Source: Vicugna vicugna
Taxonomy: Eukaryota
Assembly (NCBI GenBank): GCA_013265495.1
Contig: MU062233.1
Span: forward strand, 7,842,554 to 7,906,553
Direction of reading: 5' to 3'
Length of the DNA stretch: 64,000 nucleotides
How positions within the stretch are numbered: position 1 is the first letter of the stretch; every line of letters begins with the position of its first letter. This document shows, one piece after another, positions 41,860-64,000 of this stretch. Made by a program: the position numbers and the translations under genes. Below the pieces are notes generated by a model. That model was not told where the DNA came from, searched no databases, and saw only the letters and a program-made list of their open reading frames with translations.

Positions 41860-42813
41860 TGGGCGGGGAGGCTGCTGTGCCCTGGCCTGCGGCTCTAGCC
41901 TGGCCCCCATGGCCCCTGATTCGTTTTTAAGGCTCACTCTCCGGCCGCCTTGCTTCTCCAGTTGAGTCGGGGTGGAGACCATCATCGACAAGTTCCAGAG
42001 CTGCTGGGGGTTTGGACGGCACATTTGTGGTACCCGGCACCACAGCCACGGCCCTGAAGCCGACACCCTTGGGTAGGGCGAGGGTCTTAAACAGGGGCTG
42101 GACTCTCTCTCCTCAGGTTTTGGTCTCCATGCTGTGGCCAGAGAAAATGCAGAGATTCTGTGGCAGCGGGGGGAGAGCGGGGCAGGATTGGCCATATTTG
42201 TAAGAGCACAAAGGCCAGGGCCTGTGTGTGCTTTCCCTTCCTGGCTACCTTGAGTAGCTGTGCAGAGTGAAATAGAGCATTTCTTGTATTACAGAGGCTC
42301 ACACAACCATGAGGCGTTATGGAGATTACTGTCACTGCTGCCAAGAGGGACATGTATCATTCCAGGCTCTTGGTTACACATGCTGAGAACTGGTTTAGAA
42401 AACAAAACATCTCTGGCAACTTACAGAGCTGGCAAGTCAGCTTGGTTGGGCTTCCCCAGGACTGCCGTGTCTGCTCCACTCAGGCCAGAGAGGAAGCCAG
42501 TTCGGGCTGGTGGCCTTGCGTCTGCAGGCCTAGCTCTGCTCCGGGGAGCAGACTCACAGGCCATGACGGCCATCACTCCTGTCCTCCTCACCCAGGGACT
42601 CAAAGGGCTGCTGCCTGTCTCATGGTAGGGGTGTCCAGACCTGGGGCCAGAGGAGCCAAGGAAAGAGGCCAGTGATAACTTTGTGACTTCAGCAAGCTGT
42701 GACATTGGTGGGGCCTGTCTTCTAACAGGGAACTGTCTATTCCAGAAGTTGGTCCTGAGGGGCCTGGTAGCTGAGTCTCCTGGTCCCCTCAAGGGTGTCC
42801 TCACTTGCAGCCC

Positions 42814-45800
42814 TCAGGTTTGGTGCCACAGGGTTTTTGCTTCGGGGCCCAACCTGTTGGGAAAATAGGGAGGTGGAGTGAATTTAGGGCATAGCTGCTC
42901 CAGAATCTTCTAGTACTGGTGCCCTAAGCCTCCCTTGGAAAACCGCACCTGCTCCTACCATTGATGTGGGATGAGGACGCTGGGAGCTGAGAGGCACAAG
43001 TGGCCGTTACATGTGGGATGGATGGGAGATGATTGGGTCTCATGACCCCACTCACTGCATGTGTCTGCCCCGGGCATGTGGCTAGACTCTGAGCAGAATG
43101 AATGGCAGCCCTGATAACCTTAGAAGCCACTGTATCCAGGACAAGGCCTGTTCACGGAACAGCACATCATCTGAATCATAAATCGGAGCCTGTGGTCCTG
43201 CAGGAGCAGGTGGACAGTTACACCAGAGACCACAGCTGTAGCTGCGACCCGTTTTGATGTGAGTGCTCCCTCAGGTACGGGCCCGTGTGTGTGTCTCTGC
43301 GCACATCGGTGTCTGTATGTCTGTTGTGCGTGTGTGCCTCGGTGACATCCACTCCCGGCCTGTCTGGGACAGTAAGGCTCCCTTCCCCCTTGGAGCAGGG
43401 ACCTGGTCCTTGGACTGGGGAAAGCACAGGAGGATGGAGGCAAGGGTGCAAGAGGGGTCTAGCTGTCCTGTCAGCAGTGCCCCATCTTGAAGAGGAAGGA
43501 GTGGAGGAGGCCGAGGAGGGAGGTGTGTGGGGCCCCGGGCAGACTTCCTGGCATGTGCCCTTACCGTGGTCTGGCCTGGGTGGGACAGCCGCTAGGAGCC
43601 TGGTGCACTTTCCTTTACGGGGCCAGCCACCTGCGGGAGCTCCTCGGGCTGCAGGTGGCTGTCAGTGCACACGGGCATCTCCTTCAGTGAGGAGGGCAGG
43701 GGACAGCCATGGAATCTGTGGGGAAAGGGAGCCTCAGGGTCCGGACTCCGTTGCCTCTGCTGAGAGTCGGGGTGGAGGTTGGCCCCACACCGTCCAGCGT
43801 AGGTCTGGGTCCTGGGACCTTGGGCTTAGGAGGGCAGAGTCTGTGCCTGTCGTGGGGGCTCAGGACTCCCACCCACACACCCGGGTGCCCTACCTGAGCG
43901 GAGCGGCCGTGCTGGGGCCCCTTGCAGCAGCTTGCTCAGCCGGGAAGCCCAGGGGTCCGGCTCGAAGTTCTGGGCTCAGACTAGGGGCTGCAGAGCAAAG
44001 AAGAACACAGTCATCCTGGGCTGTATGCTCAGCTGCAGCCTCCCTGCCACGGCCTCAGTGTTCATGTCCTCCTCAACCTCATATGTTGAAATCCTAACCC
44101 CAAGGTGATGGTATTAGGAGGAGAGGCCTTCAGGAGGTGATCTGGTCCTGAGGGTGGAGCCCTTATAAAAGAGACCTCAGAGAGCAGCCTCCCCCCTTCC
44201 ACCCTGCAAGGACACAGCAAGAAGGCGACATCTGCAGCCTGCAGGAGGGCACTTACCAGACACCCAGCCTGCTGGCGCCTTGTCCTTGGACTTCTCAACG
44301 TCCAGAACTGTGAGAAATAAACATCTGTGGTCCTTAACCTACCCAGCCTGTGGTCTACTTGTTGCCTCAGCCCAAACAGACTAAGAGGCACCCAGAGGCA
44401 CACACCAAGCCTCGCCCCCGATGAGGGGTGCAGCCCAGGCGGGGCACACAGGGCAGGCTCCCCCAGTGCACCCGGCCTCCTGGGAGACGGAATGCTGATG
44501 GTCCCGGAAAGGCTTAGCCTGGAGGAGATTCTAAAGAAACTCGGTTCCCTTTGGGATTCTGGAAGGACAGCCTCAGGGAGCTCCCGGGGGAACAGACTGA
44601 CGCATAGAGCCAGCAACCCAGAGGGACTCCTGGGTGGGGCCCCTGAACACTCTCCACTTGGAGCCTGTCAGACCACAATGACAAGGGGCTTTTGGTCTAG
44701 GGGGTGCTGGGGTGCGTTCTGTTTCCCTCCTGGTAGAACTGGGCTTGGCTACTGTCTACAAGATACCCCAAGGGAGGTGCATTCAGAGCTGTTTTAAGAC
44801 TAGAAGGTTAGAAAAGGCCTCAGCCAGACAGAGCAGAGCCTGGGGAAGCCCACAAGGATCCTTGAAGGAAGGTCTCAGGGGAGTCAGGCTCCAAAATGGG
44901 TGAAACAGAACTAGGAGGCAGCCAGGGGGTCGAGCCTGGCCCCACCTCTGCTACTAATTAGCTTTGTGATCTTTAGTTAGTTGCTTACCCCCTCTGAGCC
45001 TTAAATTGAGAAAAGACAAGTCCTGTTTACCTCTCAGACTATAGAAGTACCAGATACGAAACTTCTGAGGATGCGTTAAACACCAGCAGCTTGGGGCCCA
45101 GGGAATCAAAGCCCCCTGCGCCCCCCCAGGCTTCCCCTGGAGCCTACCTGCCATGCTGCTCAGGGCGTGATGCTGGCTTTCAGCCTGCCCTTCAGATGGT
45201 GCTGCAAACAGGGTCTCCATCCCAGACAGCCTGCCACCCAGACAGCCATAGGTCAAAGCCTGCCTCCCAGGCAGAGGACCCTGCCTCCAGCCCCTTCAGC
45301 TGCTCTGGGGAGGCCATGCCAGCTGAGTTAGCATGTCTGGGGGCCAGCATCTCTCTCCTGACTCGGCCCTCACCTTAAGGAGGTGTCTTTTCCATCATAG
45401 TGGTCCCTTGGCCTCTCACACTGGGCTTCTGTGAGGTCAAAGGAGGCTGTGGAAGCCACGTTCTGAGGAGAGATGAGAGGCAGGGGTTACCACGGCCATC
45501 CCTGCTTTCCCCTGTGGGGCCTCTGTCCTGTGCCCGTCCGCCCACTGCCTGGTACCTCTGCCACCGCCCTCTCATCCCAGGACAGGCTCCGGCAGCTGTC
45601 CCCCAAGGCCCCATGGCAGCTGTGCCGGCGGCTCAAGCTGGGCTGTGGAGAGAAGGCGGTGAGGCCACACCAGCCTTGTCAAAGCCTGTGTCTGCAGAGG
45701 CTCCCAGGGCAGGTGCTAGGCTGGACCAAGGAGCCCACGGGGAAGCGGGAGCCAAGGAGCGACTTCCAGGGAACCCAGGAGGAGGAAGGGGGCCCACCCC

Positions 45801-46252
45801 GTCCTGGGTGAGGGCAGAAGCTGTGAAGTGGCCCCAGGGAGCCAGACTGTTGTGGCGGGGAGCGTGTCCACCACAACGCCAGGGCGCCAGGCCCTGTGCC
45901 TTCCGAGGCCTCCAGCGGTCCTGTGGAGGGAGCTGCAGCAGAAGGAATCTCTGGGCACTTACCTTCCTCCCCCGCGGCAGGAGCTGCTACTTAAGCTCCT
46001 CCGAAGATCCCTCCGTGGTGGGGGTACCCTTTGCATCCTTACCCCTACGGCCCCGGCTGCGCGCTCCAGGGAGACAGTGGTGGCCAAGGTTATGTGCGGC
46101 CCAACAGGGATGTCTGGCTGCAGGTCCCTTGTCCCAGCCAGCTGTGCTCCAGGCCACCAGCTTCCTGAGAAACTCTGCTGGAGGGAGGCTGGCCCACTGC
46201 CAACTCTCTCGGGCTGCAGCCCCTTCACCTGTTGCAGCAGCTTCTGGTCCAT
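42814..46252 (-). pseudogene. SPTBN5: Disrupted C-terminal linker / PH-domain segment of SPTBN5 (degenerate exons; stop in ancestral frame)
   Basis: Exon-equivalents: 46118-46252 (no GT after ...RDLQ), 45963-46037 (DAKGTPTTEGSSEELK*QLLPRGRK, TAG at 45987-45989), 45556-45642, 45374-45462, 45148-45230, 43894-43987, 42814-42853 (TGA). They are homologous to the recalled human DAKGTPTMEGSLEFKQHLLPGGRQ...AAPSEEQAESWWRAL region. The type 'pseudogene' refers only to this segment. Confidence 0.7.
44045..44386 (+). mobile_element. MaLR solo LTR (MLT1/MST-like)
   Basis: Diagnostic segments CATATGTTGAAATCCTAACCCCCAAGGTGATGGTATTAGG, CCTTGGACTTCTC..CCAGAACTGTGAGAAATAAA and CAGCCCAAACAGACTAAGA. Confidence 0.8.
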
Positions 46253-46607
46253 CTTGGGGAGAGGAGAAGGGGGGCAGGTCAGGGTTCCCGTGGGCTCTGT
46301 GTCCCAGCCCCTCCTCCCCACGGCGCTCCCACCCAGAGGGAGCCCCTGCCTCCTCGTTTTTCAGCTCTTCCTGCTTTGGCTCAAGAGACTTCCCTCTCGT
46401 CCCAGGCCACAGGGCGCCCTAGCTCACCAGGAGGTGGGGGTGACAGGACACCGTAGCTGGCAAGGGAAGAGCAGCGCTCTCCTGAAGGGTCAGGTGCGGG
46501 CTCAGTGCCTGCGGATAAGCCAACTCTCGGGCTAAGACCAGGATCGCTGCCACCATTGGTCCCCAGGCCCCTGCCTCCTAGGACACCCAGCTTCTGCTCA
46601 CCCTCAC

Positions 46608-49600
46608 CTTCCTCTGAAGCTGGGCAAACCTCTCTTCCTGGGCAGCCAGCAGCTTTTCAAAGTCCTGGTGTCTGCAGAGCAGCAACTCCACGTCTGCCAC
46701 TGAGTGCTGGGGAGAAGGCAGCCAGGGTGAGGCCCGGCTCCTGGGGGCACAGAGAGCCTTCCCCTCACCCTCCACAGCCTGGCCCAGGGGTCAGTGAGCA
46801 GAGGAGCCATGGGATCCGCCCTTGGTTGTGGCTGTCAGTGCAGCTGGCTAAGGGGCAGGGCCCCAGCTCACCCCGAAGTTGGGGTCCAGCAGGAGGCCCT
46901 CCCGGGAGGCCAGCCAGGCCTCGGCCTGATCCATCCCCTGCCACAGCTTCCGCAGATGCCAGCTCTCCTCACAGCGTCCCTGGCGCAGGACCCAGGCCTC
47001 CTCGAGCGCCTGCAGCCGCCCTTCCAGCTCCTGCAGACACTGGGTCACCTGGTGGGAGGGCGCCGTGGGTGGGATGCTCAGCCAGAGCGCCCGTTAGGGC
47101 GGGGCTAGAGTGCCCAGGAGAGGTGTCGGGGAAGACCCTGAGGCCTGGACCGTCCTCTTCTCTGCCCTCTCTCCCCACCTCTTTCCTGGCTTTCCCCTTC
47201 TGCTGGGGGTTCTGAAGCCCTGGGTAACTGGGCTCTGTGCCCAGCTCAGCCCCAGACTCATCTCAGTGCTCATACTTCCAAGGACATGAAGTGGCTATTG
47301 TCCACCAGCTGCTGCCCTTCCTGCCGTACATTCTGGGCTTGAAGGCAGTGCTCCTTGATGTCTCGCCCCAGCTCCTCATGCTGCTCCAGGAGCTGCTCAG
47401 CTCTAGTCACATCCCCAGCCAGCTCCTCTGAAGACACCATCACCTGCTTCTCCTGAGCCCATGCTCTGTGGGCAGGGAGTGGAAGCTGCTGTCAGGGCCA
47501 GGAGCCCTGTGGGGTGGGGAGGGGGGTGGAGCAGGGCAGGAGCTGCACAAGGGGCTGAGGACTGTAGCTCCCCAGAGAGCTGGGGTGACCCTGCAGGGGA
47601 GAGCTAAGCCAACAGCCGGGGAGGACCCACTTACAGCAGTTCCCGACAGCGTCCGAGGAAGGCGTGGCCCTGGGCAGCCTGCTCCAGCTGCTGACCCCGC
47701 TCCTGGGCCTTCACATTCAGGCTGGCCCAGGCTTTCTGCACCTCAGCCAGCTGCTTGGCCAGGCCCTCCTGAGCCTCGGGGTGTAGCTGGCCCAGCCGGC
47801 AGGCCTCAGTTGGCACCTGTGCCACCTCCTTCTCCACGGCTGTCAGTTCCCTCTGCCGCCAGAACACATGATCAGGCCTCACCCCCCGGCACCTGATGCC
47901 TGCTCCTCTTCAGGGAGCACCCAGTCCCTCTGGGGAGCTGGTTCTGCTTCCAGACTGCTCCACAACCTGGGAGGCAGGCCCTCCCGTCCCCCCGCCTTCA
48001 GGGAGGGGCTGAGACGGGCAGGCCGTGGCATGTGGATCCTCACCTCCAGGCATCTGTGCTGTTGCTGCAGGGTCTGTACCGACGACAGGCTGTGGCCACA
48101 GGCATCTCCTGCCATCAGGCTGGCCTTCTCCTGCATCCAGCCCCGGAGCTCGGCTGCCACCTGCTCAAAGCCGCGGACCTCCCGGGCTGCAGCCAGGTTC
48201 TGGGAGAGAAGGGAGGGCCTGCTCTGGCCACGGTCCTCTCTTCCTGGAGACATGGCCTCCTGGGCTACCTCCTTTTATTTTTTCCTTATTTTTCAAAATT
48301 GTTTACTTATTTTTAAATTAAAGTATAGTTGGTGTACAATATTATATAGGTTATAGGTGTACAATGTAGTAGTTTACAATTTATAAAGGTTATACTCCAT
48401 TTATACTTATTATAAAATATTGGCTATTTCTCAGTGTTGTGCAGTATATACTTGTAGCTTATTTTGTACCTAATAGTTTGTACCTCTCAGTCCCTCACCC
48501 GTGTCTTGCCCCTCTCCCCTTCCCTCTCCCCCTGGTAACCAACAAGTCCACGGGGATTGGTGACTCTTCCATGAGCACCAGGTGCAGAAAATGTCCTAGA
48601 TGTGGCAGCCACTCAGTGAATGTGTGATGTTGCTGATGACACGTGGTGGGGCCCCAGGGGACATTCTGTGAGGAGAGGGTCTTCAGTGCATACTTATGAG
48701 GAAGGCAGAGGTGGAGACTCGGAAGCAGGCGGGAATGGGTCCATGTGAGGGAGGAAGTTGGTTTGGGGGATCTGGTTGAGGAGAAGAGGGTCTGCTCAGG
48801 AGGCTGCCCAGTCAGGACTCTCAGAGACAGCCTCCCTGGGCTGCAGGCTCTGGCAGGGGCTCAGGGATCTGGGCTGCTTTTCTAGAAACAGCTCTCGCTG
48901 AGAGCTAAGGTGATAGGGGAACACTGAGGATTTCCTTGGCGTACAGATCCACTCAGAGCATGAGGATGAGACCTCACCCAGTGAGCTTGTGTGGTGAAGG
49001 AGACACCAAAGAGGCATGTGTCTTAATGAAACTGAAGCCTGCTTCAGTTTAGCTGGGGGTTTAGAGGGGGTCAGATGTTGGCCAGACATGCTCTTTCTCC
49101 CTGGAGGTGTCAACTGCACAAGGAGGAAACCAAGTTGGTACAAAGACTCAGAGGGGGCTGGAGGTGGAAGATTTTGAGCCTCTTGATCTGCTTGGCACTG
49201 GGAGTTAGAGGCAGACACCTCCCTCCACTCACCCACCCACACCCAAACCCAACTGAACTGGTGGGTCTGCTGTCCCTGGCCCAGACAGAAGGCACAGATG
49301 TCCCCACCCCTCGGCTGCCCCTGGTCTGGTCTGGAGGCACCCACCTGTGTGCGGGCTTTCAGTGCCCTGTCCAGCCTCTCCCAAGTGGCCTCAACGCGGC
49401 TCCGGTGCACTTGAATCTGGGGAGAGCACCTGGGGGCTGCTCGTTCCAAGGAGCCTGCCCGCTCCCGCAAGGCCTGCACCCTGGCCTGCCCCAGGCTCTG
49501 GACTTCCTTTCTGAAAGCATCAAACTTCTGTTCCAGCACCTGCAGGGTGTAGGGCCAGGGAGGGTCACTCTGGAGGTGTGGTATCCTGCAGCTCCCAACG

Positions 49601-52600
49601 CTGACGAAGGGCTTGGCAGAATCGGCCACTTTTGACGTCCTGAGGCTCTGCCTCAAGAACTGCAGGGATCTGCCCAGAGGCCCCCACTTCCCATCTGCTC
49701 CCCCCTCACCCTCCCTCTTTGCCCTTGTGATCCACTGTCCTCCAGGTTCACTCAGGAGTGACTCACCTTGACGGCCTCCAGGTCCTGCCCATAGTCCTGG
49801 GACTCAGCAGAGGCCACTTTGCTGGCCAGCCAGGCGTCCAGGAGCAGGGCTTCCCGCTCCAGTTGGTGGAGCTGCAGCTGCTCCCGCAGGCCTTGCCCCC
49901 TGCACTCCGCTCTCTGCAGCAGCCCCGAGTGGGCCTCCCTCACTGCGCGCATCTGGGCAAGCACCTTAGGGCTGCGGCAGGAAGGACAACCCATTAGAGC
50001 GCTTCCTCTCCAGGCTAGATCAGCCTTCTGCCTCTGTAGGGACGGGAGGGGCCCTGCCTCTCCTCCCTATTTGGTCCTGGCAACGACCCACCTTTCTGAG
50101 TTCGGCCTGCTCTCAAGGAGGGCAGCTCTCTGCTGCAGCCTCTCGATGCGAGGACTGAATGCCTCCAACTCTCTCCTGGTGGTGTCCAGCCTCCGCAGAA
50201 AGGCTTGAGTGGCCTCGGCACTCTGGCCCATCTCCTCCGTGTCCAGGACACAGCCCTGCTCTTCCAGCCAGGATTCTGCCTCCAGGAGCTGGGGTGACAA
50301 AGGGGACAGTTTTCCCTGGGTGATACCCTCCAGGGCTCTCAACTTTGAGTTCATGACCTTGAGATTTAGAGCAGTGAGTGGTTCTCAGCCTGGCTGACTG
50401 GGATCACCTGAGAGCCTCAACAACTCCCTATGCCTGGCTCTCCCCCCATAAGATTCTGATCTGGTCTGGAAGGGAGCCTGGGTAGCAATCAGCATTTCTC
50501 CAGGGTTCCAGGTAATTCTCACGTAAAGCATTGACTAAGAATCACTGGTTTAGAAGAAACAGCAAAGCAAAACCAACCCAAATCCGGGGGGCTGTTTTCT
50601 GGGAAACAAGCTGAAGGAAACGACTCAGTGGGGGTGACAGAAAACACACAGAGAGCCTGGAGCCCCAGCCGGGGGTTACCCTCCAGGCCTGCCTACACCT
50701 TGGGTGTTCTCCTGCCCGGCCCCACCTCACCCCTCACCTCTGTCAGGAACTGCTGGGCCTCCTGAGCCTCCTGCAGCCTCCGCCGCCTCTGTGCAGCCTC
50801 TGCCCGCAGGCGGCCCACGGCATCCTCCAGCTGCTGCACCCGGGCAGCCACGTCGCGGGCGGCAAAGTGCCCAGCCTGCACCAGCTTGCGCCCTGTGCCC
50901 AGCACCGCCTGGGTCAGAGCCTCGTGGCTGCTCATCTCACTCTCCAGGTTCTGCAGAGACAGGACCGGGGATGCTCCTGGGTGCTCCTCAGGGGACCCAG
51001 AGCTGTGTTTGAAACCTCGTGGGATCCCACAGACGCCCCCAAAGAGAACCTTGTCCTTGTGACCAGCAAAGAATCTAAGGCCCCAAAAGCCTTTTGGAGG
51101 CAGGAAGCTCCCAGCACCAGTGGTGGATGGAGGATGGCCCCACCCTTCCTAACGGGCCCACACCTGGTGCTTCTCCTGCAGGTGCCGCACGGTGCTCAGG
51201 CTCTGGCCGCAGTCTCGTGAGGCAGCCAGGGGCAGCTTCTCCCGCACCCAGGCCAGCTCCTCATCAGCGTCCCTGAAGAACTGCAGGAGGAGGCTCCGGG
51301 CCTCCAGGGCTGTCCTGCGCTCCCGCAGGGGCTCCCTCAGGCCCTCGAACCTGCAGCAGTGGAGGGCGGGACCAGGGTGGGGGACCCTGGTCGTCACTAT
51401 GATGGCCAGACTCTGACCCACCCTGTGCCCCTCATCATGGGCTGGCTGGGGGAGGCCCTGGGGAGATGAGTGAGGGGCAGGGAGGAGGGATGGATCTACC
51501 TCTGAAGCAGCCGCTGGAACTGCTCTTCCAAGTCTTGGGTGAGGCTGGGGCTTTCCCGCACAAAGGCCTGGGCCTGGCCCAGCAGGGCCTGTGCCCGACC
51601 AACCTGCCTGTCCACTGCTGCCTCCAGCTCTCCCTGTGCCCCTAGGAGCTCGTCCAGCCCAGGCTGGTCCAGGCCCCCGATGGGGGCCCTCAGCTTGACC
51701 TCCACGGGCTCCAGCCAGCTCTCCAGTTCCTCCACACTCCGCCGCAGACGCTGGGCCTGAGGCAGAATGTGAGGTGGGGGCATGCAGGGGAGAGGCCTAG
51801 AGCTGCATCTAGCCTGCTCTGTAGCCCACAACCTCACCTCACAGGTCTCCTGTAGCTTGACTGCCTTCCTCTGGCAGTTGGCCTGCAGCTCCTCCCAAAG
51901 CTTTCTCAGCTCCTGCAGGTGCTCCTGGATGGTCTCTGAGGCCGGGTGGCCTTCCTGCAGCAGCCTCTGCCCCTCCTATAGTCACAACATGGCACACACC
52001 TCATGGAGTCAGGACTGCTGGTATCAGGGCCCTTGTGTTGGCTCCAACTATCAGCCCCATGGCTGCAGTCTGTGTGCTAGCTGTGTGATTCTCAGGCAAG
52101 TTCCTTAACCTCTCTGAGCTCATTTTTCTTAGCCACATAATGGAGACAATAGTGGTTATTTTGTTTAAACGAGAGAAAACATTTCAAATACTTATATTAG
52201 ACTGAGGGGGCCTGGAGTCAGGGCCTACCCTTTGTAGGTGGAAGAGGGTAAATAAAAAAGGTGCTGTACTTTGACTCCTGCACCCACAGGACTTCTGGCT
52301 GGGCCCTGACTCTCCTCTGATGTCTTTCCAAGAGAGTTTTCAAAACCATCACATCAAAACACTATCTTTGAAATTCTTGAAAAGGCACCATTTTTGGAGA
52401 GGGTACCCCAGGGAAGCCTCTGTGACTCACTACCCTTTGGTGCTTAGTACAGCGTCTGTATACAGAAAGCATTCACTGAGACTTCGCCATCCACTGAGAC
52501 TTCGCCATCCACTGCTGTGGTTCAGAGCCAGTTGCCAGGGCTCTGTGGGGTTGCCCTGCTCTGGCCAGTAAGCCTGGCCCGGGCCCCCAGGGCCTCACCG

Positions 52601-55600
52601 TCTGCAGCCTTTGTTGGTGGTGTACACCCGCATCCAGCTCGGCCTGGAGATTCTGCTGCTTCCGCCACTGTGCCTGCAGCCCGGCTGGGTCCCGCCAGCC
52701 CTCTTCCAGGGCCACCAGGTTCTTCTCCCTCAGCCATGTGGCCACCTGGGCACACAGGGAGGACCAGGCTCTGCTGCCTAGGGTGCTTGTCCACCTCACC
52801 TCTGGGCTGCCCCGGGGAAGGGTGGCTTTTTCCTGGGGCAACTCCTTCCCCACCAAGCACAACCACTCCCCACTCCAACCAAGGAGAACCTCGTAGAAAT
52901 CCTGCAGGAAAGCCTGCAGCTGCCTGAGCTCCTCCAGCTGGCGGTGACGGGTCCTGGCTCGCTCCAGGAGTGCCTCTTTCCTGCCGGAAGGAGGGTGTCA
53001 GGGGCCTCAGGTCTTTTCACTGGGACCTGGAGCTGCTACGGGGATGAGTGTGCACACATACACACATGCGTGCACATGCGTGCCCTTCCAGCCCTTCTTG
53101 TGGATCAATATACCCTGAGTCTGGGCTTTCCTTTGTTTCTTTAATTTTTTTTTTTTAGGTGGGGGGAGGTAATTGGGTTTACTTATTTCGAGGAGTTACT
53201 GGGGGTTGAACCCAGGACCTCACGCAAGACCATGCATGCTAAGCATACGCTCTACCGCTTGATCTATACCCCACCCCTGGGCTTTCCTTTGAAATAGAGA
53301 CACACCCTACTTCCCCTCTTCATTAGTGCCTGTTATGGGCTGAATTGTGTCCCCGCAGATTCTTAGGTTGAAGTCCGAATCCTCAGTATGTCAGAATGTG
53401 ACTGTTTTTGAAGATAAGGTCTTTAAAGAAGTAATTAAGTTAAAATGAGGTCATTAGGTTGGGCCCTAATCTGATACAAAGGGTGTCCTTATAAGAAGGG
53501 ATAAGCACACAGGCACACACACACAGGGACAGACCGTGTGAAGGCAAGGAGTGAGGCCTCAGGAGAAACCAGCGCTGCTGACATCTTGATCTTGGGATTT
53601 CTAGCCTCCAGAATTATGAGAAATAAACTTCTCTTGTTTAAGCCACCCAGTCTGCGATATTTTGTTATGGCAGCCCTAGCAAACTAATTCAGTGTCTACA
53701 TCACTTTTTTGATCAGACACTGCTATTAGTGCGACTTCGTTGGGATGTATTTGTAAGTGTGCGTGTGTGTATATTTGTACTGATTTATATATGTGTGTAC
53801 TTCTGTACAAATATAGTAAGTCCATTGCCATATGCGCAAAAATAGACATCAGAAGTGAGATCTATTAAAGAGGAAAAGAAGTTCTAACACCCCTCACCCT
53901 CACCCCACCAGGGTGCACACACACCTCCCACCAGTGTAGCCCCGACGCTGGCGTTAGTGGGAATGCTTGTGTCCTCCTGCTGGGGCTGCCAAAGGGGGCT
54001 GGGGGCAGGGGAGATGCAGAGTCTTGATGGAATGAAAATGGCTTCAGAGGATGCCAGGAGCCTGAGAGGGAGGGGGTAGGGTGGCACTGTCCTGGGGGGC
54101 AGCCAGGTCTGCCAGGAACTACCTAAGGGGACTAGGGGGAGGGAGTGTTGACAGAGACCAGCACACCAACGTTTGCCATCTGTCAGTCAAAGACCTCAGG
54201 TAGCCAGGTGGGGTCCACCTGCAGGGAAGAGGAGGGGGTGGCCTCCAGGGCTCCAGCACAGGAGCCACAAGCATTGTGGGCCTTGGTGGGCTCTCTGGGA
54301 AGGAGGGAGACCCCTGCCAATCTGAGATCTGGCTTTTGGCCAAATATGCCTTGGTCTGAGGGGCTGGACGGGGCAGCTGAACCAGATGGGATTTTACGAG
54401 GGAAAAAGGCAGAGCTCATAGCTACGCCAGCTTCAGTTACATGAGCATAAGAAATCTGCCAAGTGACTGTCAGGCACTGCGTCAGGACATCAAGGGTCCC
54501 TTTCCCATCCTCACCACAACCCTAAGAGGCAGGTACTGTTACCCCCTCATGGTAGACATGAGACTCCATGAGAAATTTGCCACAAGTCCCACCATGGGTG
54601 GGCAGCACAGAAACTCAGCTGTCTAACGACTGTGCTCTGGTATCGCCATCCCATGAGGTCATCTCTCTCTCAGTTTCTCACTATATGCTGCTCTGTAAAA
54701 GTCCCTTTTATCTTAGCTGGGTGACCATGTGCTGTGTGACTCAGCAGGCTGACACACTGCAGGGCCAGGAGTGGTGGGGTCCTGGCATCCAACCTCAGCA
54801 CCCGGAAAATGCTGGGAGCCCAGGCTAACAGGCAGAAGAGCCGGGCAAGAGCCAGACATTCGTGCCAGCCCACCCACCACCCCTTAGCCCCAGAGCCGCT
54901 GTACCTCAGGAGCATGGCCTGGCACCGGCCCAGGGCGCCCTGGGCCTCGGGCTGTCCACCCTGGAGCAGGCTGCGGGTGGCGGCCTCCAGCGCGCTGATC
55001 TTGTCGGCCCGTGCCTCCAGCTCCCGTTCGTGCATCTTGTGCTTCCACAGCAGGGTCTCCACGTTGGCCGGGGAGTCCTGGGGATTGATGCTGTCCACAG
55101 GGCTGCCCCTCCTCCTCCCAAGCTATCTGCTTTCCCACCTAAACCATCTGATCAAACACATCCCCCGAATCCCTCCAGGCCGTATCTGGCTTTAGGGCAG
55201 TGATTCTCAACCAAGCATGGGTCAAGAGTCAGAATTTCCAGAGCAGGTGGAGCTTCTCCACATAACAGGGACACCCCCTCCTCTGCACTCCCAGTAAGGC
55301 TATGTCAGCACAGGGCGAGTCAGCCCTGATTATTCTCTGAGCGCCCTCATGGGTCAGGCCCTCCTGCCACAGAGCTTGGGACGGTGGTGGGAAAAACAAA
55401 CATCTGGGTGTAAGGAAGTAAGAAGGGCAGAGGTGAGAAGCATGTTGGGAAGGAGGCAAGAATGTGTCCAGGGCCACACACTCACCCTCCAAGCTCCCAC
55501 GGCACCTCCTGGTGCACAACCGTCACCAGTGATGGATGGGTAAGCAACTGCTTGTGGTTGAGGGCTGGGAGATGCCCTTGGCCTGGGAGCTCAGGCAGCA

Positions 55601-58600
55601 CTGTCTGCCTTGATCTCTAATGCTGCTCTTGCAAACCCTCCCTCACTCTTGCTGGGCACCTACCCCTAGACCCTCACTGGCTGGGCAGTCTTCCTGGCTG
55701 CAGAGCCAATGTTCCATCTGCTCCACAGAGCTCAGAACTAGCTGTTGAAAAAGAAAAGGAAAAAGGCAAGAGGAAGTGAGCAGAGGGTTCAGGGAGAGTG
55801 AGCCTGTTGGGGTTCCCAGTGGGGAAACCAGGCTGCTGGGGCCTGGCTTAACAGAACGAGCCCACAGCAGGAAGACTTGCAGCGCACGAGCTGAGTGGTG
55901 CGTGGTAGGTGGTGGGAAAAGCCCCTGGTACAGCAGTCTCTCTGGCTTTGGCTTTGACCAGGGGCAGTGGGTTTAGCATAGGCCTCACGGGTGGAGTTGG
56001 GATGAAGGCTGCCTACCTGCAGCTCCAAAGCCTGCTGCAGCTGGAGCTGGTGCTCCTGCCAGGCCCGTTCCAGGCTGTTCAGCTCCTGGTCTAAACCAGC
56101 CAGGGCCTGGCGGATGTCGGGGGTGGCTGGGTGCCCGGTGGCAAGCAGTTGCTGCCCGGTGCTTCGGGCCAGGCTGATGCTGTCTGTTCGGGAGTCCAGC
56201 TCGGCCTGTAAGAGGACTGGGCTCAGATCCCAGAGGCTGAGGCTCCCTGAGTGGGAGGGAAGAGGCCCAGTGGGAAGGAGGAGAGGTGGGGAAGACAGCT
56301 GAGGGGGTTAGGGTGGAAGAGGTGAAAGGCAGAGGCAGCTGATACAGAAAGAACCCAAGAGAAAATTGGGATCACAGCAAAGGGGAGGCCAGGGAGGACG
56401 TGAGATCCCAAGAAAGGCCCCGGGGCCTGGGCTGTTCACCTTGCACTCCTGCTGTTCCTGCAGCATGTGCTGGACCTCCGCAAGGCTGCGTGGGGTGCTT
56501 CGGGCATCCATGTCAGCTCGCAGCCTCTGGGCCCAGACCAGCAATTCCTGCAGCATTGCCTGCAGCTTCTGAGCTTGGTGCAAGGCATCCAGCGAGTCCT
56601 TCCTGTCCACCAGGGTCATTAGCTAGTCCCAGGGCCTCCGAGCCCCTCTTTCCCCCTGTGCCCACAGGTGCCTTCTCTCCCTGAATCCCTTCAGCCAAAG
56701 AAAGGGCCCATGGGCTGGGAATTAATATGGTGACAATACAGATGGTTATTGGAAGGACAGAGGAAGACTCTTAGGGGCAGTCTGGGGACTGGGCTGCTGC
56801 AGGGGACGGGTCCACGAGGGCAGTGAGGGAAAGAGGCCCCAGGGCTTGTACCGCTTCTGGGCCCTGCTCCGGAGCTGCCACCAGCTGTCCATCATCTCCT
56901 GCTGCTTGAGGCTGAGGCTGTGGGCTGCCCCAGGGCTTCTCTGGCAGAGACGGCCCACCTCACGCTCTAGGGGCTGTGTGGGAAGCTAGGGTCAGGGGCT
57001 GGGGCAGGGAGGCAGGTTGTGCTCAGGGGAGCCCCAGCTGCAGGAGGCCCCAGCCTGTGGTGTGCAGCTGAGTGGATCTGGCTGGCTCTTGAGGTCCTGA
57101 CCCCCACCCTGCCGCCACATGCCTGCCCAGGGTCCCACAGCGGAGGTCCCCTGGGCCCGGGCCCACCTCCGCACCCAGCTGCACACCTCCACTTGTTCCT
57201 GGATGAGGCCCATTTCCTGCTCCACCTGCTTGTGTTTCCACATCAGCCTCTGCACACCATCCAGATGTTTCCCGTAGTCCAGGGTCTGGACCAGGGTGGC
57301 CTGGAGAGGAATGGGGTGTTACCAGTGGCCTTTGCTTCAGCTCCTCCCTCATGGCAGATGGGTCACTGGCAACAGGGTTTCTGTGTGGGAAGCAAGCGCC
57401 CAGCCTGATTCCCTTCTCAGTGTCCTCCGTGGGCTGGAGCAGGACGCTGACCCTGACCAGAGGGCCCTTCCTTTTGTGAAGGGGGAAGATTCCCAGGAGG
57501 GACTTGAGCTGGAGTTAGTACCCTCCACCGGTGGTGCCTCCACATGCATTGTCTCACTTGCTCTCGTTCCTCTGCGAGGACTGTGCACGGACTGGCCTGG
57601 CTGAGGCAGGAACCAGAGGGGCGGTAGGAACAGCTGGCAAGAGCCCTTGCGTGCCCAGAACAGGGCACCACCTGCTTCCTGGGGGGCTTCTCAGGCTGCA
57701 GACCACTCTTCCACTCCGGCCTCTGCCAGCACCTAGGCCATGTTTCTCTGTGGCTGCTGACACAATCCCCGGGCAAACCTCCTGTGGGTTCTGGCCTTGC
57801 TCAGGGACAACAGAGGAAACAGTATGTGGTGGGGGGTCCTCTGGCCTCCGGACACAGTGCTTCTGAGGGAGAAAGGAGCCAGGTGGGCCAGCCTCCGAGC
57901 ATGCAATGGGGGCTTCTAGGTCCAGAGTTGACCCCGAGAGCTCCTGGAAGACCCCCTGATGGCCCCCTGGCGGGACGTGCCTCCCAGTACCCAGCTGAAG
58001 AGGAGAGGCGGATGAGGGGAGAGATGCAGAGACTCAGGCGGCACTGGCTCCCGGGCTGAACCGGCTTTTCCATCGCTTACCTTCTCCCTAATCAGCTCAG
58101 TGATGTCACCTAGCTTTTGGGACAATGCATGTATCTCCAGAGCTCCTTCAAGCTGCTGCTGGTACCGGAGCAGGTTGCCATGGAAACTGTTCCACCTGGC
58201 AGAGAGGGTGTAAGGCTGAGTCTGAGGTGGCCCTCCAGCCCGTCTCCAGCCCCGTCTCCAGCCCCTCTGCTTCCGGCTCAGAGACTGGCCTGCTGTTGAG
58301 CTGGTGTCGCCGCTGGCAGATGGTCTTGACTTGCTCGGGGTCCCGGTTCTTGAGCTGTAGTGACAAGTCGTTGATAATCCTGATGCGGGCGTCATCCACC
58401 GTGTCCTGTGGGGGGTGCAGGGTGAGGGCATTGGCAGCACCCACTCTGAGACCCTTCTCTGCACTGCAGTCAGCACTTGGAGGGTTTGCTTGGTCCCAGA
58501 AGAGCATGAGGAATAACATGTCTGGGGAGTGGAGGCAGCTGCTGCTTCAGCTGTGGACAGCCCACCCCATGCCGGGTGCAGTGAGGAAGATCCACTTGGG

Positions 58601-61600
58601 GATTGTAGCCCCAGGGCTGTCTCTAAGGCTGGAAAAAATGCTCCCCAGGTCAGGACCAGGCAGGAGGGAGAAGGCAGGCATGCACAGAGGAACAGAAGCT
58701 TTCAAAGTTGTAATGAAGCTTCTCAGGATAAGAAAAGCAAAGAATGTGTAGAAGGAAATGGTGAGTGCCAGCCCCCTGGGGTTTGGGTGTCCCCACCCCT
58801 GGGAGTCACCGGGCCTCGGCTGCCACTGCTTAGACACTGGGTGGGGCTCCTGGGTACATGGGGAGGGGGTCTGTGGCACTGGGTGGGATGGCAGGCATCC
58901 TTCCGCTGTAAAAGCATCTTGCATTGGTCTGCGTTTTCACAGCACTTCCCAATAGGTGTCTCAGACGGGGTGGGCAGGGAAGGGGGTTGCTCTCTCTTAC
59001 AGAAGCCAGAGCAGAGCTCAGAGGCTAACATGGTGAACTTATGGCACAGGCAGGACTCAAGCCCAGCTCCTCAAGTGTATCTAATGCTCTTCTTACTACG
59101 GCATCTGGCACAGTGGCTGCGAAATTCCACCATTAGCAAAGGCTATCTTAGATCAGAGCATTGCAGCTTTTAAAAAGTCATACATACTTACCTCAGGGGG
59201 TGAAGTTGGCGTGTTTAGGCTCTAACATTTGATTCTGAAACATTTACCCAATTTCTTTCCTCTATACCTTATAAGGAAAATAGATTTTTGGATTGTGTGT
59301 CTGGGGTAGGGGGGTGAGCAGGTGCTGAGGTGCTGAACGAGCAGCTGCAGTTTTTTGATTGTCCACTACGCCCAGACGTGTGTGTTCCTTATTTTAAAAT
59401 TTTGAAATAATTGCAGATGCACATGAAATTGCAAAAGTAGTACAGAGAAGTCCCATGTCGCCTTCACCCAGCTACCCACGATGGTTAACATCCTATGTAA
59501 CTGCAGTACAATATGAAAACCAGGACACTGACTTCAGTACAAATGTTAACTAAACTACAGACTTCATTCAGACTTCATCAGTTTCTACATGCACACATCT
59601 GTGTGTGTGGGTGGCATAGTTCTAGGCAGTTTTATTATATATACAGATTCGTGTAACCACCACCATCACACATACAGGCTCCCTTACCTATGAGGTAAGC
59701 AGTAGCCCCATTTTAAAGATGAAGAAACTGAGGCTCAGAGAGGTGAGGGCACCTGCCTAAGCATGTGCAGGTTGTAAGCGCAAAGCCAACACGAGAGTTC
59801 ACATCTGGCCCCAAAGCCCGTGCTCAGTCACTGCTCTGAGCTGCATTTCCCAATGCGGGGATGCACTGGCCTACCTCTCCCCAGCGGGGCCCCCTTACCC
59901 CGGCCCAGACTCCTGGCAACTTGTGGAGCTGCCTGCGGAGCTGCAGGCAGTGCTCAAGGTCCTGGCCCAGGTCGCCGATGTCCACCGTCACCTCCTGTGG
60001 AGGCCAAGTGTCTGGAAGGCTGCACTCTGAGCATCCGGGCCCAGGTGCACCCAGCCCTCAGGCACCCAGCTGCTGGGGCAGTGTAGGGGCAGGTGGAGGC
60101 TTTGGGAACTTCTTGCTGGGGCTCCCTCCTATCAGGCAGGGAGCTGCAGGCCTGGGGCTCCCTCCCCAACCTGTCAGCCCCACAGCCCCACCCTGGCTCT
60201 GTCCTTGTTCAGCTGGGTCTCACCATCTCCTGGATCCAGGCCTCTGCACCATCTACTCTCTGCAGGAATTCCAAGAAGTTCCGCTTGTCCTCTAGGTCCC
60301 GGCCCCGGAGAGCCACCGTCTGTCTCAGCTTCTCCCAGTGCTCCTGCAACTCCCGCAGCTTCTGGGAGACCTCTCCCGCCCAAGGGTGGCTTTGTGCTAG
60401 GAGAGCCTCGCCCTCCTGGGAAGAGAGGGGACACTAAGAGATCTTGCCTGTCACCCTTTCTCTTGCTTGCTTTTTCTCCCTCACAGGCTCCCAGGCCCCN
60501 NNNNNNNNNNNNNNNNNNNNNNNNNNNNNNNNNNNNNNNNNNNNNNNNNNNNNNNNNNNNNNNNNNNNCCGCCTCAGACCTTTCCCTTTGGCCTTCCTAG
60601 AGTCTTCCCTCTGGGGCAGGGTGGGGCTAAGGGCCTGGCTGTTACCTTGGCAACAGAGGTTATGACCTCTTCATGGGCCTGGACCTCAGCCTCAAAGGCC
60701 TGGTGTTTCGGCAGGTGCCTCAAGTTATCTTTCAAGTCCCCAGGAGGGACTGGCTCTTTTAGCCACTGGATTCGCTCCTGGATCCAGTCCTCAGCCTGGC
60801 AGGGGTGGGGACATGAATCTCATGATGCTGATGCTGCCTCAGTTCAGAGACATCCCCCACGCCTGCCCTCAGCCATGCCCAGGTAGCTGACTGCTGGGCT
60901 GGGCAGTGTCCGGTAAATGAGATTCAATGGTTTGAGCCCAGGAAGACACCCCCAGGCCCAGCTGGTCCCCCAGCCACAGGAAAGGGCTGAGCAGGGACCT
61001 TGGGTGGGATCTCATTTTGGAGGTACAGCTTGTCTGTCCTAGGTTCCTAGACTGCTCTGCTCCCCCTCAGCACCTATGTTCTGGCTCTTCAAGAGCTTAG
61101 GAAGCAGAGGGGTCTCCACACACAGGGTCTTCAAATCAAATGTTCTGGGCTCCAGTATGGCCTCTGGGAAAGTCATTTAACTCTCCAAACTTCAGTGTCC
61201 TTATCACAGGGCTGTGGTGAGGCCTGAATGAGCCCTTGAAGGTGAACATCATTTGCAAACTGTAAAATGTGCCCAGGTGGAAGGCACTGGGCTGGGGTGG
61301 CCGTCTGACCTGGGTGGTGGCCCTGGTGAAGGCAGCCATCAGCAGGGAGGTGTGCAGGGTGTGTCCCCGGATCTCCGCCAGCTTCTTCACCATAGCCCGG
61401 TGCTCCAGCACTGTGTGGAGCATGTCCTGCGTCCTGGGGCCCCCGAGCATCTTTGCCTGCTCACACAGAGCTGCCTCCTGTGGGCAGGGTGGTGGGACGG
61501 GGGACACAGCCCACTGTTTACCATATAGGGGAGGCTGGAGCAGGGGCTGGCCCTGAGGAAAGCCCTGCCCTCAGCCCTGCGTGACCTAGGGCTGCCCAGT

Positions 61601-64000
61601 CCTCCCAGCACTACCCGCCAGCTCCCCAGTGACCATGTGATATGCAACCAACTGGCCTCTGTGTCCCTGCAGTGTGATTCACCCCATCCCAGGCCCTCCT
61701 CTTGTACCACACGCCCAACTCTGCACAGTCAGCCCCAACCAGGCTCCCCTAGCCCCACAGGCCACCCCCAGACATAAGCTTTACCTGTGGGTTCACACCA
61801 AGCACCCTGCATACCCCATTCAGAACTCTCCAAATTTCCCAGACTCCCACCACCCACCTCTGACCACATGCAGGACTCCCCGGACCCATTACCTTCTCAT
61901 CCTGGGCCATCAGCACCTTCTGGAAGGTCTTATGCTTGCTGATCAACTTCTCCACCTCTTCCACTGAGCTCCCCAGGGCACTGGTTTTCAGGATGACCTG
62001 GATCAACCCACAGAAAAGTCAAAGGGGCCATCAGGGACTATCCAGACAACCAGCCCCCCTCCCCATTTGCAGCCGTCTGGGCTGAGGCAGTGAACAGCCC
62101 CTGGGCTCTGAATCAGGGAAAAAACCAGAAGCCCCAGGAAGCAAGAGAGCGAGTGAGGGGGAGGGGAGAGAGGGAGGAGAGGGCCCTCTAGGAGGCAGGT
62201 ATGCCTATTCCAGGATGAGGGCACCTGCCTCCCAGGCTGTGAGGATCTGGTCCAGGTGGCCGCACTTTCTGAGGAAGAGCTGCTCCTGGTGCACGGCCTG
62301 CAGCCTCTCTTGCTTTTGCTCCCAGGCCTGGAACACCTGCTCTCGCTTGTCCCTCAGGGCTCGCAGCCCTTCCTGGACCTGGGGATGGGCAGTGGGGGAA
62401 GCCTGCGCTCAGGAGAGCCACGTGGACCAGACAGAAGTGGATGCTGAGGGAAGCCTCTGAGGAGAGGCTGGTGTGGCACAGCGGGGCAGGGTGTGAGCAC
62501 AGTTGTCAGGCGCAGGCTTGGCCAGGATAGGCTGAGGGGGCACTAGACAAGGGGGCCCACCTCCTTGCCGGATGTCCCGGCAGCCAGAAGCGCCTGCTGG
62601 CCCAGCTGGGCGGCGCGCTGGTACAGCTCCTCCTGGGCCTCCAGCTCTGCCCGAAGCTGGTGGTGGGTGCTGAGCTTTAGCAGGCTGCTGCTGGGCTCCT
62701 GGGAGCTCTCCTCCACCTGCAGCTCCTGCCACATGCTGGTCACCCAAGAGGTGTAGTCCTGCACCTGGATCCCAGGGAGACAGAGGGAGAGAGTGGGGTG
62801 CAGGCTGGGATGGGCTGGGTGGCAGAGAACAAGGCTCTGAGGCACCACGACAGCCCACGTGGATCCACGCACGTACTGGAGTGGCCCCAAGGCGTCCCAG
62901 GTCAGAGCCACAGGTGAGGGCCCTGGGTCACCTGGTTCCCTTGCTGCCATCCAACTCAGTGCTCCCAGGTCCACTAAACTTCCACAGGTGCCAAGACCAG
63001 CCTCCTCCTCACCCACACCGAGACTTCTCTCCATTCTTTACTTTCACTGCCTTTCTTGCTTAGAAGTTCTTCTCCTGCCTTCCATCCCTTCCAAGTGCAC
63101 ACATTCATCTAGGGCCGAGGCCTTCTTTGCCTCATGAAGCCTTCCCTGGCCCCGACTTGACTTGTCCTCTGAATCTCCAGTTCAACACTCACAAGTGGCC
63201 TTCTACCGATTTGTGTGCAAACGCATGCTAGAGCTGGAAGAGCCTCGAAGCCTTGTCCAAAATCATTGCACAGATGAAGAAGGGTAAATGGCACAACATG
63301 TGTGCGAGAGTTTTGAAACCTCCAAGCGCTCACACACAGTGGATAACAAGCTAGGGGTAAGTGCCTTGCTCGAGCCCACGCTGCTAGGAAGTGGCAGAGC
63401 TAGGTCTCTAAATGCAAGCCTTTCTGCAGTGTCACACTTTGGGCCTTGCAGTCTACCAGGCACTGGGACATGGGGACTCCTGGGAGAGCCCAGGGCCAGG
63501 CCTGCTGTCCGCATCTGACTCTCTGGGGTGTTGGGCTTATCTCCCAGCGAGACAGGCTCCCTGATGGCAGTTGTCCCATCTTTCATAGGCTCCATGTCAT
63601 CCTTCTCTCCCCACCCACAGCTCCTAGCAGAGAGCCTAACACAGAGGTTAAAAAGATGCCTGATCCAGAGGTCACTGTCTAGGACATTTGGGTCTCCAGT
63701 TACGGGCTTTCCTGGGCTGTTTTTCTCCCAAACTTTGGCTGGGACCCCTGTCTCCTGACTGTGCTGTCACTTACCTGGCCAGGCGGTGACCTAGACCTAA
63801 GGAGTCACTGCTGGGACCCATGCTCAGCCCTCTGACCAGCCAGATGGACATCGCACGTGTCTACACTCGTCTTCCATCTGGAGCTGGAGGGCCTCATTAT
63901 TGCTTGCACACTCATGGTGCAACACAGACATGCACGCACACATACACACATGCTGCCCTGGGGAATGATGGCTCACCGCTGTGTGGAAGCGGGCCAGGAG
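46608..64000 (-). CDS. SPTBN5: SPTBN5 (spectrin beta V) spectrin-repeat rod, 5'-partial, 30 exons, frame-intact
   Basis: Minus-strand exons (plus coordinates): 63977-64000 (partial), 62561-62764, 62229-62378 (GC donor), 61893-61997, 61310-61477, 60646-60795, 60224-60415, 59899-59994, 58290-58405 (GC donor), 58081-58195, 57187-57300, 56852-56973, 56440-56602, 56017-56205, 55664-55741, 54905-55077, 52890-52980, 52599-52745, 51838-51975, 51500-51756, 51164-51350, 50738-50950, 50092-50288, 49767-49971, 49345-49539, 48044-48199, 47635-47852, 47276-47465, 46872-47048, 46608-46706. Total 4629 nt with no stop or frameshift. Spectrin-repeat peptides (e.g. FFRDADEELAWVREKLPLAASRDCGQSLSTVRHLQEKHQ) match recalled human SPTBN5. 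Confidence 0.93.
48275..48545 (-). mobile_element. L1 3' end fragment
   Basis: T-rich start, then AAGTATAGTTGGTGTACAATATTATATAGGTT...CCCCTCTCCCCTTCCCTCTCCCC.TGGTAACCA. Confidence 0.75.
50378..50548. mobile_element. MER5-family hAT MITE
   Basis: AGTGGTTCTCAGCCTGGCTG...GATTCTGATCTGGTCTGG...AAGAATCACTGG. Confidence 0.6.
52020..52200 (+). mobile_element. MIR
   Basis: CTGTGTGATTCTCAGGCAAGTTCCTTAACCTCTCTGAGCTCATTTTTC...ATAATGGAGACAATAG. Confidence 0.65.
52474..52514. repeat. 18-bp tandem duplication (CACTGAGACTTCGCCATC)x2 plus partial copy
   Basis: Two identical adjacent copies are directly visible. Confidence 0.9.
53136..53276 (-). mobile_element. tRNA-derived SINE, camelid Vic-1-like, with 15-bp TSD
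   Basis: Minus strand reads GGGGTGGGGTATAGATCAAGCGGTAGAGCGTATGCTTAGCATGC...GGTCCTGGGTTCAACCCCCAG...poly(A). A box (TAGATCAAGCGG) and B box (GGTTCAACCC) are present. TSD CTGGGCTTTCCTTTG at 53121-53135 and 53277-53291. Family name is from recall. Confidence 0.85.
53331..53691 (+). mobile_element. MaLR solo LTR (MLT1-like)
   Basis: Starts TGTTATGGGCTGAATTGTGTCCCC and ends CCCTAGCAAACTAATTCA. Internal AATAAA. Near-perfect 5-bp TSD (GTGCC / GTGTC). Confidence 0.85.
58233..58268. repeat. Short imperfect 11-12 bp tandem repeat (CTCCAGCCC[C]GT)x3
   Basis: Visible in the SPTBN5 intron next to the GC donor at 58288-58289. Confidence 0.75.
59390..59680 (-). mobile_element. Ancient L1 (L1MB/MC-type) 3' fragment
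   Basis: TTTTGAAATAATTGCAGATGCACATGAAATTGCAAAAGTAGTACAGAGAAGTCCCATG..CCTTCACCCAG. Confidence 0.7.
59680..59840 (-). mobile_element. MIR
   Basis: CCCCATTTTAAAGATGAAGAAACTGAGGCTCAGAGAGGTGAGGGCACCTGCCTAAG. Confidence 0.75.
60500..60568. other. Assembly gap (69 N), intronic in SPTBN5
   Basis: Run of N. The flanking exons join in phase 0 (..VAK|EGEALL..), so no exon appears to be missing. Confidence 0.9.

Follow-up and report, generated by a model that had tools for sequence, protein, structure and literature searches.

An imprecise deletion of nearly one whole intron of SPTBN5 in the camelid ancestor has probably orphaned the first exon of the PH domain, which an old, conserved donor would now skip in frame. 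The first-pass annotation had read this locus as a compensatory boundary shift, in which a GT donor was lost and a new intronic donor arose that takes the transcript past an in-frame stop. The splice path that it predicted agrees with camel gene models and with selection on the downstream exons, but the history does not stand: the donor is old, no GT was lost, and the actual camelid change, the deletion of the intron between the donor at 46043 and the TAG-bearing exon, had been missed. Compared across species, the case reads as ordinary exon loss by imprecise intron deletion and not as a newly evolved rescue site. The junction 46043>45642 itself is not new, being already present in public camel gene models; what is new in camelids is the imprecise intron deletion orphaning one exon. 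A literature search found no work on SPTBN5 in camelids or on its PH-domain loss.

The window, by which we mean the whole 64,000-nt stretch of vicugna DNA analysed here, carries the 3' part of SPTBN5 (beta-V spectrin) on its minus strand, as identified from Pfam Spectrin matches and named homologues. The Spectrin matches fall in minus-strand open frames at ∼46600–62800, and protein searches with one exon and then with the full-length match returned proteins named spectrin beta chain, non-erythrocytic 5, the closest of which is Camelus ferus XP_032336758.1. DNA identity to the C. ferus SPTBN5 locus is 96.2–96.7%, with an intron mismatch of 2.8%. Lifted onto the window, the C. ferus model yields 37 stop-free exons of the same lengths, with AG and GT (twice GC) kept. 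We compared ten SPTBN5 loci (C. ferus, hippo, banteng, dog, black rhino, lion, the roundleaf bat Hipposideros, lemur, sloth, and colobus; Suina and Cetacea lie outside this species sample), mapping each annotated protein exactly onto its own DNA and aligning the segment from the exon that ends ...TRDLQ plus its extension (exon A) to the next exon. The first PH-domain exon is called exon B and the one after it exon C (Table 1).

Table 1. Features of SPTBN5 in the window; a caret marks the splice cut here and in the text
Feature	Position	Strand	Basis and remarks
Spectrin-repeat rod exons of SPTBN5 and following 81-nt exon (46508-46428)	46608..62764	-	30 exons, all open, splice sites kept (lift-over, translation)
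Upstream alternative donor site of other mammals; window reads CCAGAC	46112..46117	-	Alignment, colobus locus, donor scores
Exon A in its ancestral long form (210 nt, phase 0 at both ends)	46043..46252	-	C. ferus RefSeq lift, same length, AG/GT kept
Conserved donor GGG^GTAAGG, cut 46043/46042, abutting the old exon B start	46035..46045	-	Alignment, exon models, scoring
GTAAG, 5-nt intron remnant; breakpoints in AGG/AGGA microhomology	46038..46042	-	Alignment, exon models; common to C. ferus
Predicted 400-nt intron of the present gene, made up of the 5-nt remnant, dead exon B, and the old B-C intron	45643..46042	-	
Orphaned exon B, first PH-domain exon, 75 nt	45963..46037	-	TAG, 3-nt insertion, intact donor AAG^GTAAGT
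Exon C (87 nt, phase 0 at both ends), acceptor cacag^CCC	45556..45642	-	Acceptor strongest in gene, 13.9 bits (own-gene matrix)
3' coding exons after C	45462-45374, 45230-45148, 44307-44257, 43987-43894, 43715-43619, 42853-42737	-	

Several structural details of the gene and its surroundings are recorded here in their own right. Two introns start with GC on the minus strand, at 62227-62228 (GAG^GCAGGT) and 58288-58289 (CAG^GCCAGT), as they do in the C. ferus model. The 81-nt in-frame exon at 46428-46508 (minus strand; ALSPHLTLQESAALPLPA.VSCHPHLL) occurs in camel RefSeq models and is absent from the models of other species, and the exon at 46608-46706 (minus strand) has 99 nt where its counterpart in other species has 105 nt; both exons have their AG and GT in the window. 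The last exon (42737-42853, minus strand) differs by a 1-nt indel from C. ferus and C. bactrianus: the window has a tail of the ruminant type (...NPVAPNLRAASEDTLEGTRR...QDQLLE, then the stop), and the camels are frameshifted to ...WALKQKPCGTKPEGYK before their stop. In the annotation of C. ferus, SPTBN5 is divided between two models, one of 596 aa with the CH domain and one of 3249 aa, and C. bactrianus has one model of 3823 aa. Next to SPTBN5 on its 3' side, every locus compared has a gene on the opposite strand that encodes C2, cPLA2_C2, and PLA2_B domains (PLA2G4B-type), and its orthologue probably lies below ∼42000 on the plus strand of the window. Runs of N occupy 12358-12553 and 60500-60568, the second of them lying in the intron between exons 60795-60646 and 60415-60224. 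Tandem Repeats Finder reported no repeats in 44000-47000; an apparent 16-nt repeat before exon 45230 recurs in the acceptor regions of other species.

At the end of exon A, the letters are as first described. On the minus strand, CC (46117-46116) directly follows ...GAC CTG CAG, which ends at 46118; the frame then stays open for 75 nt (46117-46043, reading PDIPVGPHITLATTVSLERAAGAVG) up to GGG^GTAAGG, whose last exonic G is at 46043 and whose GT is at 46042-46041, 5 nt before the start of the 75-nt exon. A further candidate donor inside exon A, CAG^GTGAAG at 46229/46228, is present in phase 0 (8.46 bits, in frame). Exon A starts at 46252 (acceptor ccccaag^ATG), not at 46254, and encodes MDQKLLQQ...TRDLQ followed by the 25-codon extension PDIPVG...AAGAVG. 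The donor at 46043 keeps all nine consensus positions and scores 7.85 bits, rank 18 of 37, against a leave-one-out matrix of the gene's own donors.

This donor had been taken for a new site and the 25 codons before it for intron-derived sequence, and neither view survives comparison with other mammals. An orthologous donor stands at the same alignment column in seven non-camelid species: hippo (GGG^GTGAGG), banteng, dog, and lion (GGG^GTAAGG), bat (AGG^GTAAGG), sloth (GTG^GTAAGG), and colobus. Five of them use it in their models, with long-form exon A orthologues of 204 nt in hippo, 159 in banteng, 234 in dog, 228 in the Hipposideros bat, and 234 in sloth. The colobus model uses an upstream GC donor, and reading on from there gives an open 25-codon extension that ends in GGG^GTGAGG. 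Such column-for-column alignment argues that the donor is no chance match. Since donor and extension are orthologous across these species, both predate the split of the sampled placental orders, and the 25 codons are an ancestral 3' extension of exon A. This extension evolves neutrally between the window and C. ferus (1 synonymous and 5 nonsynonymous changes).

The supposed loss of a GT donor at 46117 is likewise contradicted by the outgroups. At the 46117-46116 column, C. ferus, hippo, banteng, dog, rhino, lion, bat, lemur, and sloth read CC or TC, and colobus reads GC, used by its model as a GC-AG donor; GT occurs in 0 of the 10 other species, an observation that the first-pass annotation itself had named as one that would count against its reading. 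A boundary shift by which camelids lost a GT after ...CTG CAG and compensated with a new intronic donor does give an in-frame path, and it looks right against the primate protein boundary alone (RGPQ^DAKG in the gibbon, marmoset, and colobus models), but with the downstream donor shared across seven other species, five of whose models use it, and no GT at the 46117 column in any species examined, we regard it as very improbable.

The alignments instead indicate that the placental exon ending ...TRDLQ has two alternative donors, an upstream one used by primate and some carnivore models and a downstream one, G^GT(A/G)AGG, used by artiodactyl, dog, bat, and sloth models and lying 25–34 codons beyond the first. 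The upstream site reads CC(A/G/C)G^GT in carnivores, rhino, bat, and sloth and CAG^GC in colobus. Four nucleotides 3' of the 46117 column, GT is found in dog, rhino, lion, bat, sloth, and hippo (the last with C at −1), GC in lemur, CT in banteng, and AC in both camelids, and the site scores −3 to −8 bits in the window against the own-gene donor matrix. A join from CCAG^ is out of frame with the next exon; the sole in-frame donor of the upstream area is the weak GGT^GTCCCC of lion-type models (LQPG^DAKG).

The camelid change lies in the intron behind the downstream donor. This intron measures 144 nt in hippo, 159 in banteng, 177 in dog, 124 in bat, and 159 in sloth, and in each of them it closes with a pyrimidine tract and TTTTCAG^GAT; the window and C. 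ferus have 5 nt. The junction GTA[AGG(A)]TGC fits the donor side (GTAAGGAG in banteng) as well as the acceptor side (TCAGGATG) of a bovid-like ancestor, a pattern that points to a camelid deletion of ∼140–150 bp, with 3–4 nt of microhomology, which removed the intron before the first PH-domain exon. Both introns flanking the deleted one are present with AG and GT in the window, so the deletion was not cDNA-mediated. An assembly artefact was considered and rejected, as the deletion is found in two independent assemblies; it is also disfavoured by DNA runs with the same species label, which contain 0.84–1.00 of the sampled words. Across 45960-46256 the share is 1.00 or 0.84 of 31 words, and the difference suggests one or two polymorphic sites, or close-relative individuals, within that interval.

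Exon B has a 72-nt counterpart in the models of hippo, banteng, dog, rhino, bat, lemur, sloth, and colobus, and in relatives it supplies the beta-1 strand, MEGFLELKQQ. In the window it reads DAKGTPTTEGSSEELK, then a stop, then QLLPRGRK, the TAG at 45989-45987 having replaced CAG. Its acceptor scores −8.6 bits, compared with a range of −0.26 to 13.9 for real sites (matrix from the gene's own 38 acceptors), and the sequence before it is purine-rich (pyrimidine fraction 0.35 vs a real minimum of 0.47). The CAG^CC, the GTAAG remnant, the TAG, and the 3-nt insertion are all common to the window and C. ferus, so deletion, TAG, and insertion predate the separation of the two lineages compared. TAG and deletion may have arisen in either order, and the deletion might even have been selected as a repair that forced the skipping of an exon already bearing the TAG.

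We propose the following course of events. In the camelid ancestor, before the Old World and New World lineages split, a deletion of ∼140–150 bp between AGG(A) microhomologies would have taken nearly the whole intron and left GTAAG directly before the first PH-domain exon. Having lost its pyrimidine tract and branch region, exon B would no longer be definable, and it bears the TAG besides. The intact donor at 46043 would, we infer, now pair with the next strong acceptor, at 45642, and the protein would lose the PH beta-1 strand and keep its distal tail. Because exon B is symmetrical, the frame is kept when it is skipped.

Translation bears out the frame of this path: the join 46043>45642 runs from phase 0 to phase 0, skips the TAG exon, and leaves the frame open to the end of the gene, where the stop proves to be a TAG (42739-42737, closing the last exon, 42853-42737) and not the TGA given earlier. 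Apart from the inner donor at 46229, it is the sole in-frame route. The RefSeq models XP_032336758.1 (C. ferus) and XP_074222690.1 (C. bactrianus, 3823 aa) both use this junction (...AAGAVG^PSLSRRHS...), although camel models of this kind may rest on frame-preserving prediction instead of reads. Exon C, which starts 320 nt beyond the end of exon B, encodes the same 29 residues as in C. ferus, with 2 synonymous changes. RNA runs contain ∼0.16 of the sampled words, a share that does not tell which parts are present; the 24-nt spliced junction had no exact match in metagenome contigs, where its absence says nothing about use, and a protein-fragment search for transcript fragments across the junction returned bat fragments only. 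Judged by frame, site strength, gene models, and selection on the downstream exons, 46043>45642 is very probably the productive splice path.

Changes between the window and C. ferus indicate how the two sides of this junction have evolved. The rod exons carry 33.5 synonymous and 62.5 nonsynonymous changes (omega 0.565, binomial p 0.0099). Exons C to H carry 14 synonymous and 8 nonsynonymous changes in the annotated frame (omega 0.17, p = 1.1e-4), against 2/18 and 4/16 differing codons (synonymous/nonsynonymous) in the other two frames, which contain 5–10 stops. Synonymous divergence in exons C to H is 0.12 vs 0.028 in introns, and CpG-rich exon sequence may explain part of this excess. The counts argue that exons C to H are under purifying selection in the annotated frame only; if so, they have been translated in that frame since the lineage split, and an in-frame join from the rod is required.

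This result bears on two other outcomes of the deletion. Were the donor at 46043 largely ignored, read-through would yield either NMD or a rod-only beta-V spectrin bearing a short novel tail, and the exons beyond would be relics. The computed read-through stops are TAA at 45961-45959 or TGA at 45635-45633; the latter is reached when the 5 nt are kept and exon B's donor is used (ending ...GGGSPA), confirming the frameshift predicted earlier for retention. That the PH remnant is unrecognisable to Pfam, and that PH-less beta-spectrin isoforms exist in other genes, would fit such a product, but the splice sites of exons C to H are flawless, their frame is open, and synonymous changes between the two camelid lineages are in strong excess in that frame only; moreover, the 210-nt exon is defined as before, by a donor of median strength. 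We consider read-through unlikely to be the main outcome.

The other outcome has the donor in use, mainly with a cryptic acceptor and only in a minor form with 45642. Three candidates in the 400-nt intron, named by their first exon bases, could compete with 45642 on their scores (45920, 12.7 bits; 45932, 8.9; 45803, 10.4). Before the deletion they lay too near the exon B donor for use; they are now 111–240 nt from the active donor at 46043, and a join to any of them would lead to the premature TGA at 45635-45633. Frame-0 selection on exons C to H speaks against mainly cryptic joins, the acceptor at 45642 is the strongest of the gene, and the RefSeq models avoid the cryptic sites, so that we give this outcome the same low probability as read-through.

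Decay of the whole of SPTBN5 into a unitary pseudogene in camelids, with the open frame a mere leftover, would account for a former exon with a TAG, for the vanished PH domain, for the split C. ferus models, and for the fairly high rod omega. This is the least probable of the readings considered, and we rejected it on the open frame and on omega: the 37 exons of the window, beyond which the 5' two thirds of the gene extend, have no stop and no frameshift, omega is significantly below 1, and a full-length C. bactrianus model exists. The lifted exons together contain one real indel, in the last exon, vs ∼17.5 expected at the intron rate, a depletion of ∼17-fold relative to introns. Exon loss remains the reading that we hold as likely.

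Loss of a recognisable PH domain from beta-V spectrin extends beyond camelids. Pfam PF00169 matches the C-terminus in rhino (46.8 bits), gibbon (38.1), lion (29.6), and, weakly, bat (22), and gives no match in the SPTBN5 of camel, hippo, banteng, dog, and lemur. In camelids the beta-1 exon is orphaned, and in the window the C-terminal helix reads AESQHHAL where primates have AESWWRAL, with the conserved Trp. A cluster of substitutions at 45165-45175 (minus strand, exon 45230-45148) separates AESQHHAL in the window from AESRHCTL in C. ferus, a stretch in which BLAST shows compensating gaps.

A different exon is affected in hippo and ruminants, whose models skip the 87-nt second PH exon. In hippo, the donor of this exon (within L002:45278-45794) has changed from GT to GA; in banteng (within L003:46800-47258), the acceptor AG has become GG, the donor is lost, and there are frameshifting deletions of 4 nt and 2 nt. 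Camelids, dog, rhino, bat, and lemur have retained an intact 87-nt exon. From these sequences, different symmetrical PH exons appear to have died independently in two artiodactyl branches, with the distal tail kept in frame. In an annotated short isoform of Rhinolophus ferrumequinum (256 aa), the downstream donor of exon A (...SGAVR^) is spliced straight to the third PH exon (NMAFTSTLDL...), and the 72-nt and 87-nt exons are both left out. It is conceivable, though we hold it at somewhat under even chances, that Cetartiodactyla could do without the beta-V PH domain from their base or even earlier, and that the domain was afterwards taken apart exon by exon, independently in different lineages, around a tail with a PH-independent function.

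Imprecise intron deletion has been attributed to end joining (NHEJ) with microhomology (PMC3020277, Trends Genet 2011). The camelid event resembles imprecise intron loss in that one short intron was deleted at the DNA level, with breakpoints in microhomology near the splice sites, a few nucleotides left behind, and the neighbouring introns untouched. It differs from the simple form in that the 5-nt remnant does not produce a plain exon fusion with a shifted frame: as the donor is intact, the spliceosome probably skips the downstream exon. That the result is exon loss and not a frameshift follows from the survival of the donor and the symmetry of the orphaned exon.

Within SPTBN5, other mammals have alternative donors at the same two positions, the downstream one ending an open extension of 25–34 codons in hippo, banteng, dog, bat, sloth, and colobus. 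In those species the downstream donor joins the 72-nt first PH exon. The camelid donor has to reach the exon after that one, and the upstream alternative is also gone from camelids, GT having changed to AC 4 nt 3' of the 46117 column. What happened to the 87-nt exon in hippo and banteng resembles the camelid loss in that a symmetrical PH exon was dropped, frame and tail were kept, and no Pfam PH match is left; it differs in the exon and lesions involved and in having no intron deletion.

Erythroid beta-I sigma-1 is a beta-spectrin isoform without the C-terminal PH domain. Like it, the predicted camelid beta-V product would have an intact actin-binding and repeat region and no membrane-lipid-binding PH module. 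The beta-I form, however, arises by regulated alternative 3' processing from a gene that still encodes the PH domain, whereas in camelids the genomic PH module itself is broken.

The locus also illustrates how an apparent pair of lost and new donors can arise from comparison with a human exon boundary, where alignment with outgroups reveals an ancient alternative donor. Camelid SPTBN5 offers a clean natural case of imprecise intron deletion causing exon loss. If the PH domain has indeed been dismantled exon by exon, the selected camelid tail would have a PH-independent function. The case adds to the evidence that several mammalian lineages can dispense with the PH domain of beta-V spectrin and yet keep the rod and the far C-terminal tail, and it bears on the membrane recruitment of beta-V spectrin without overturning current views.
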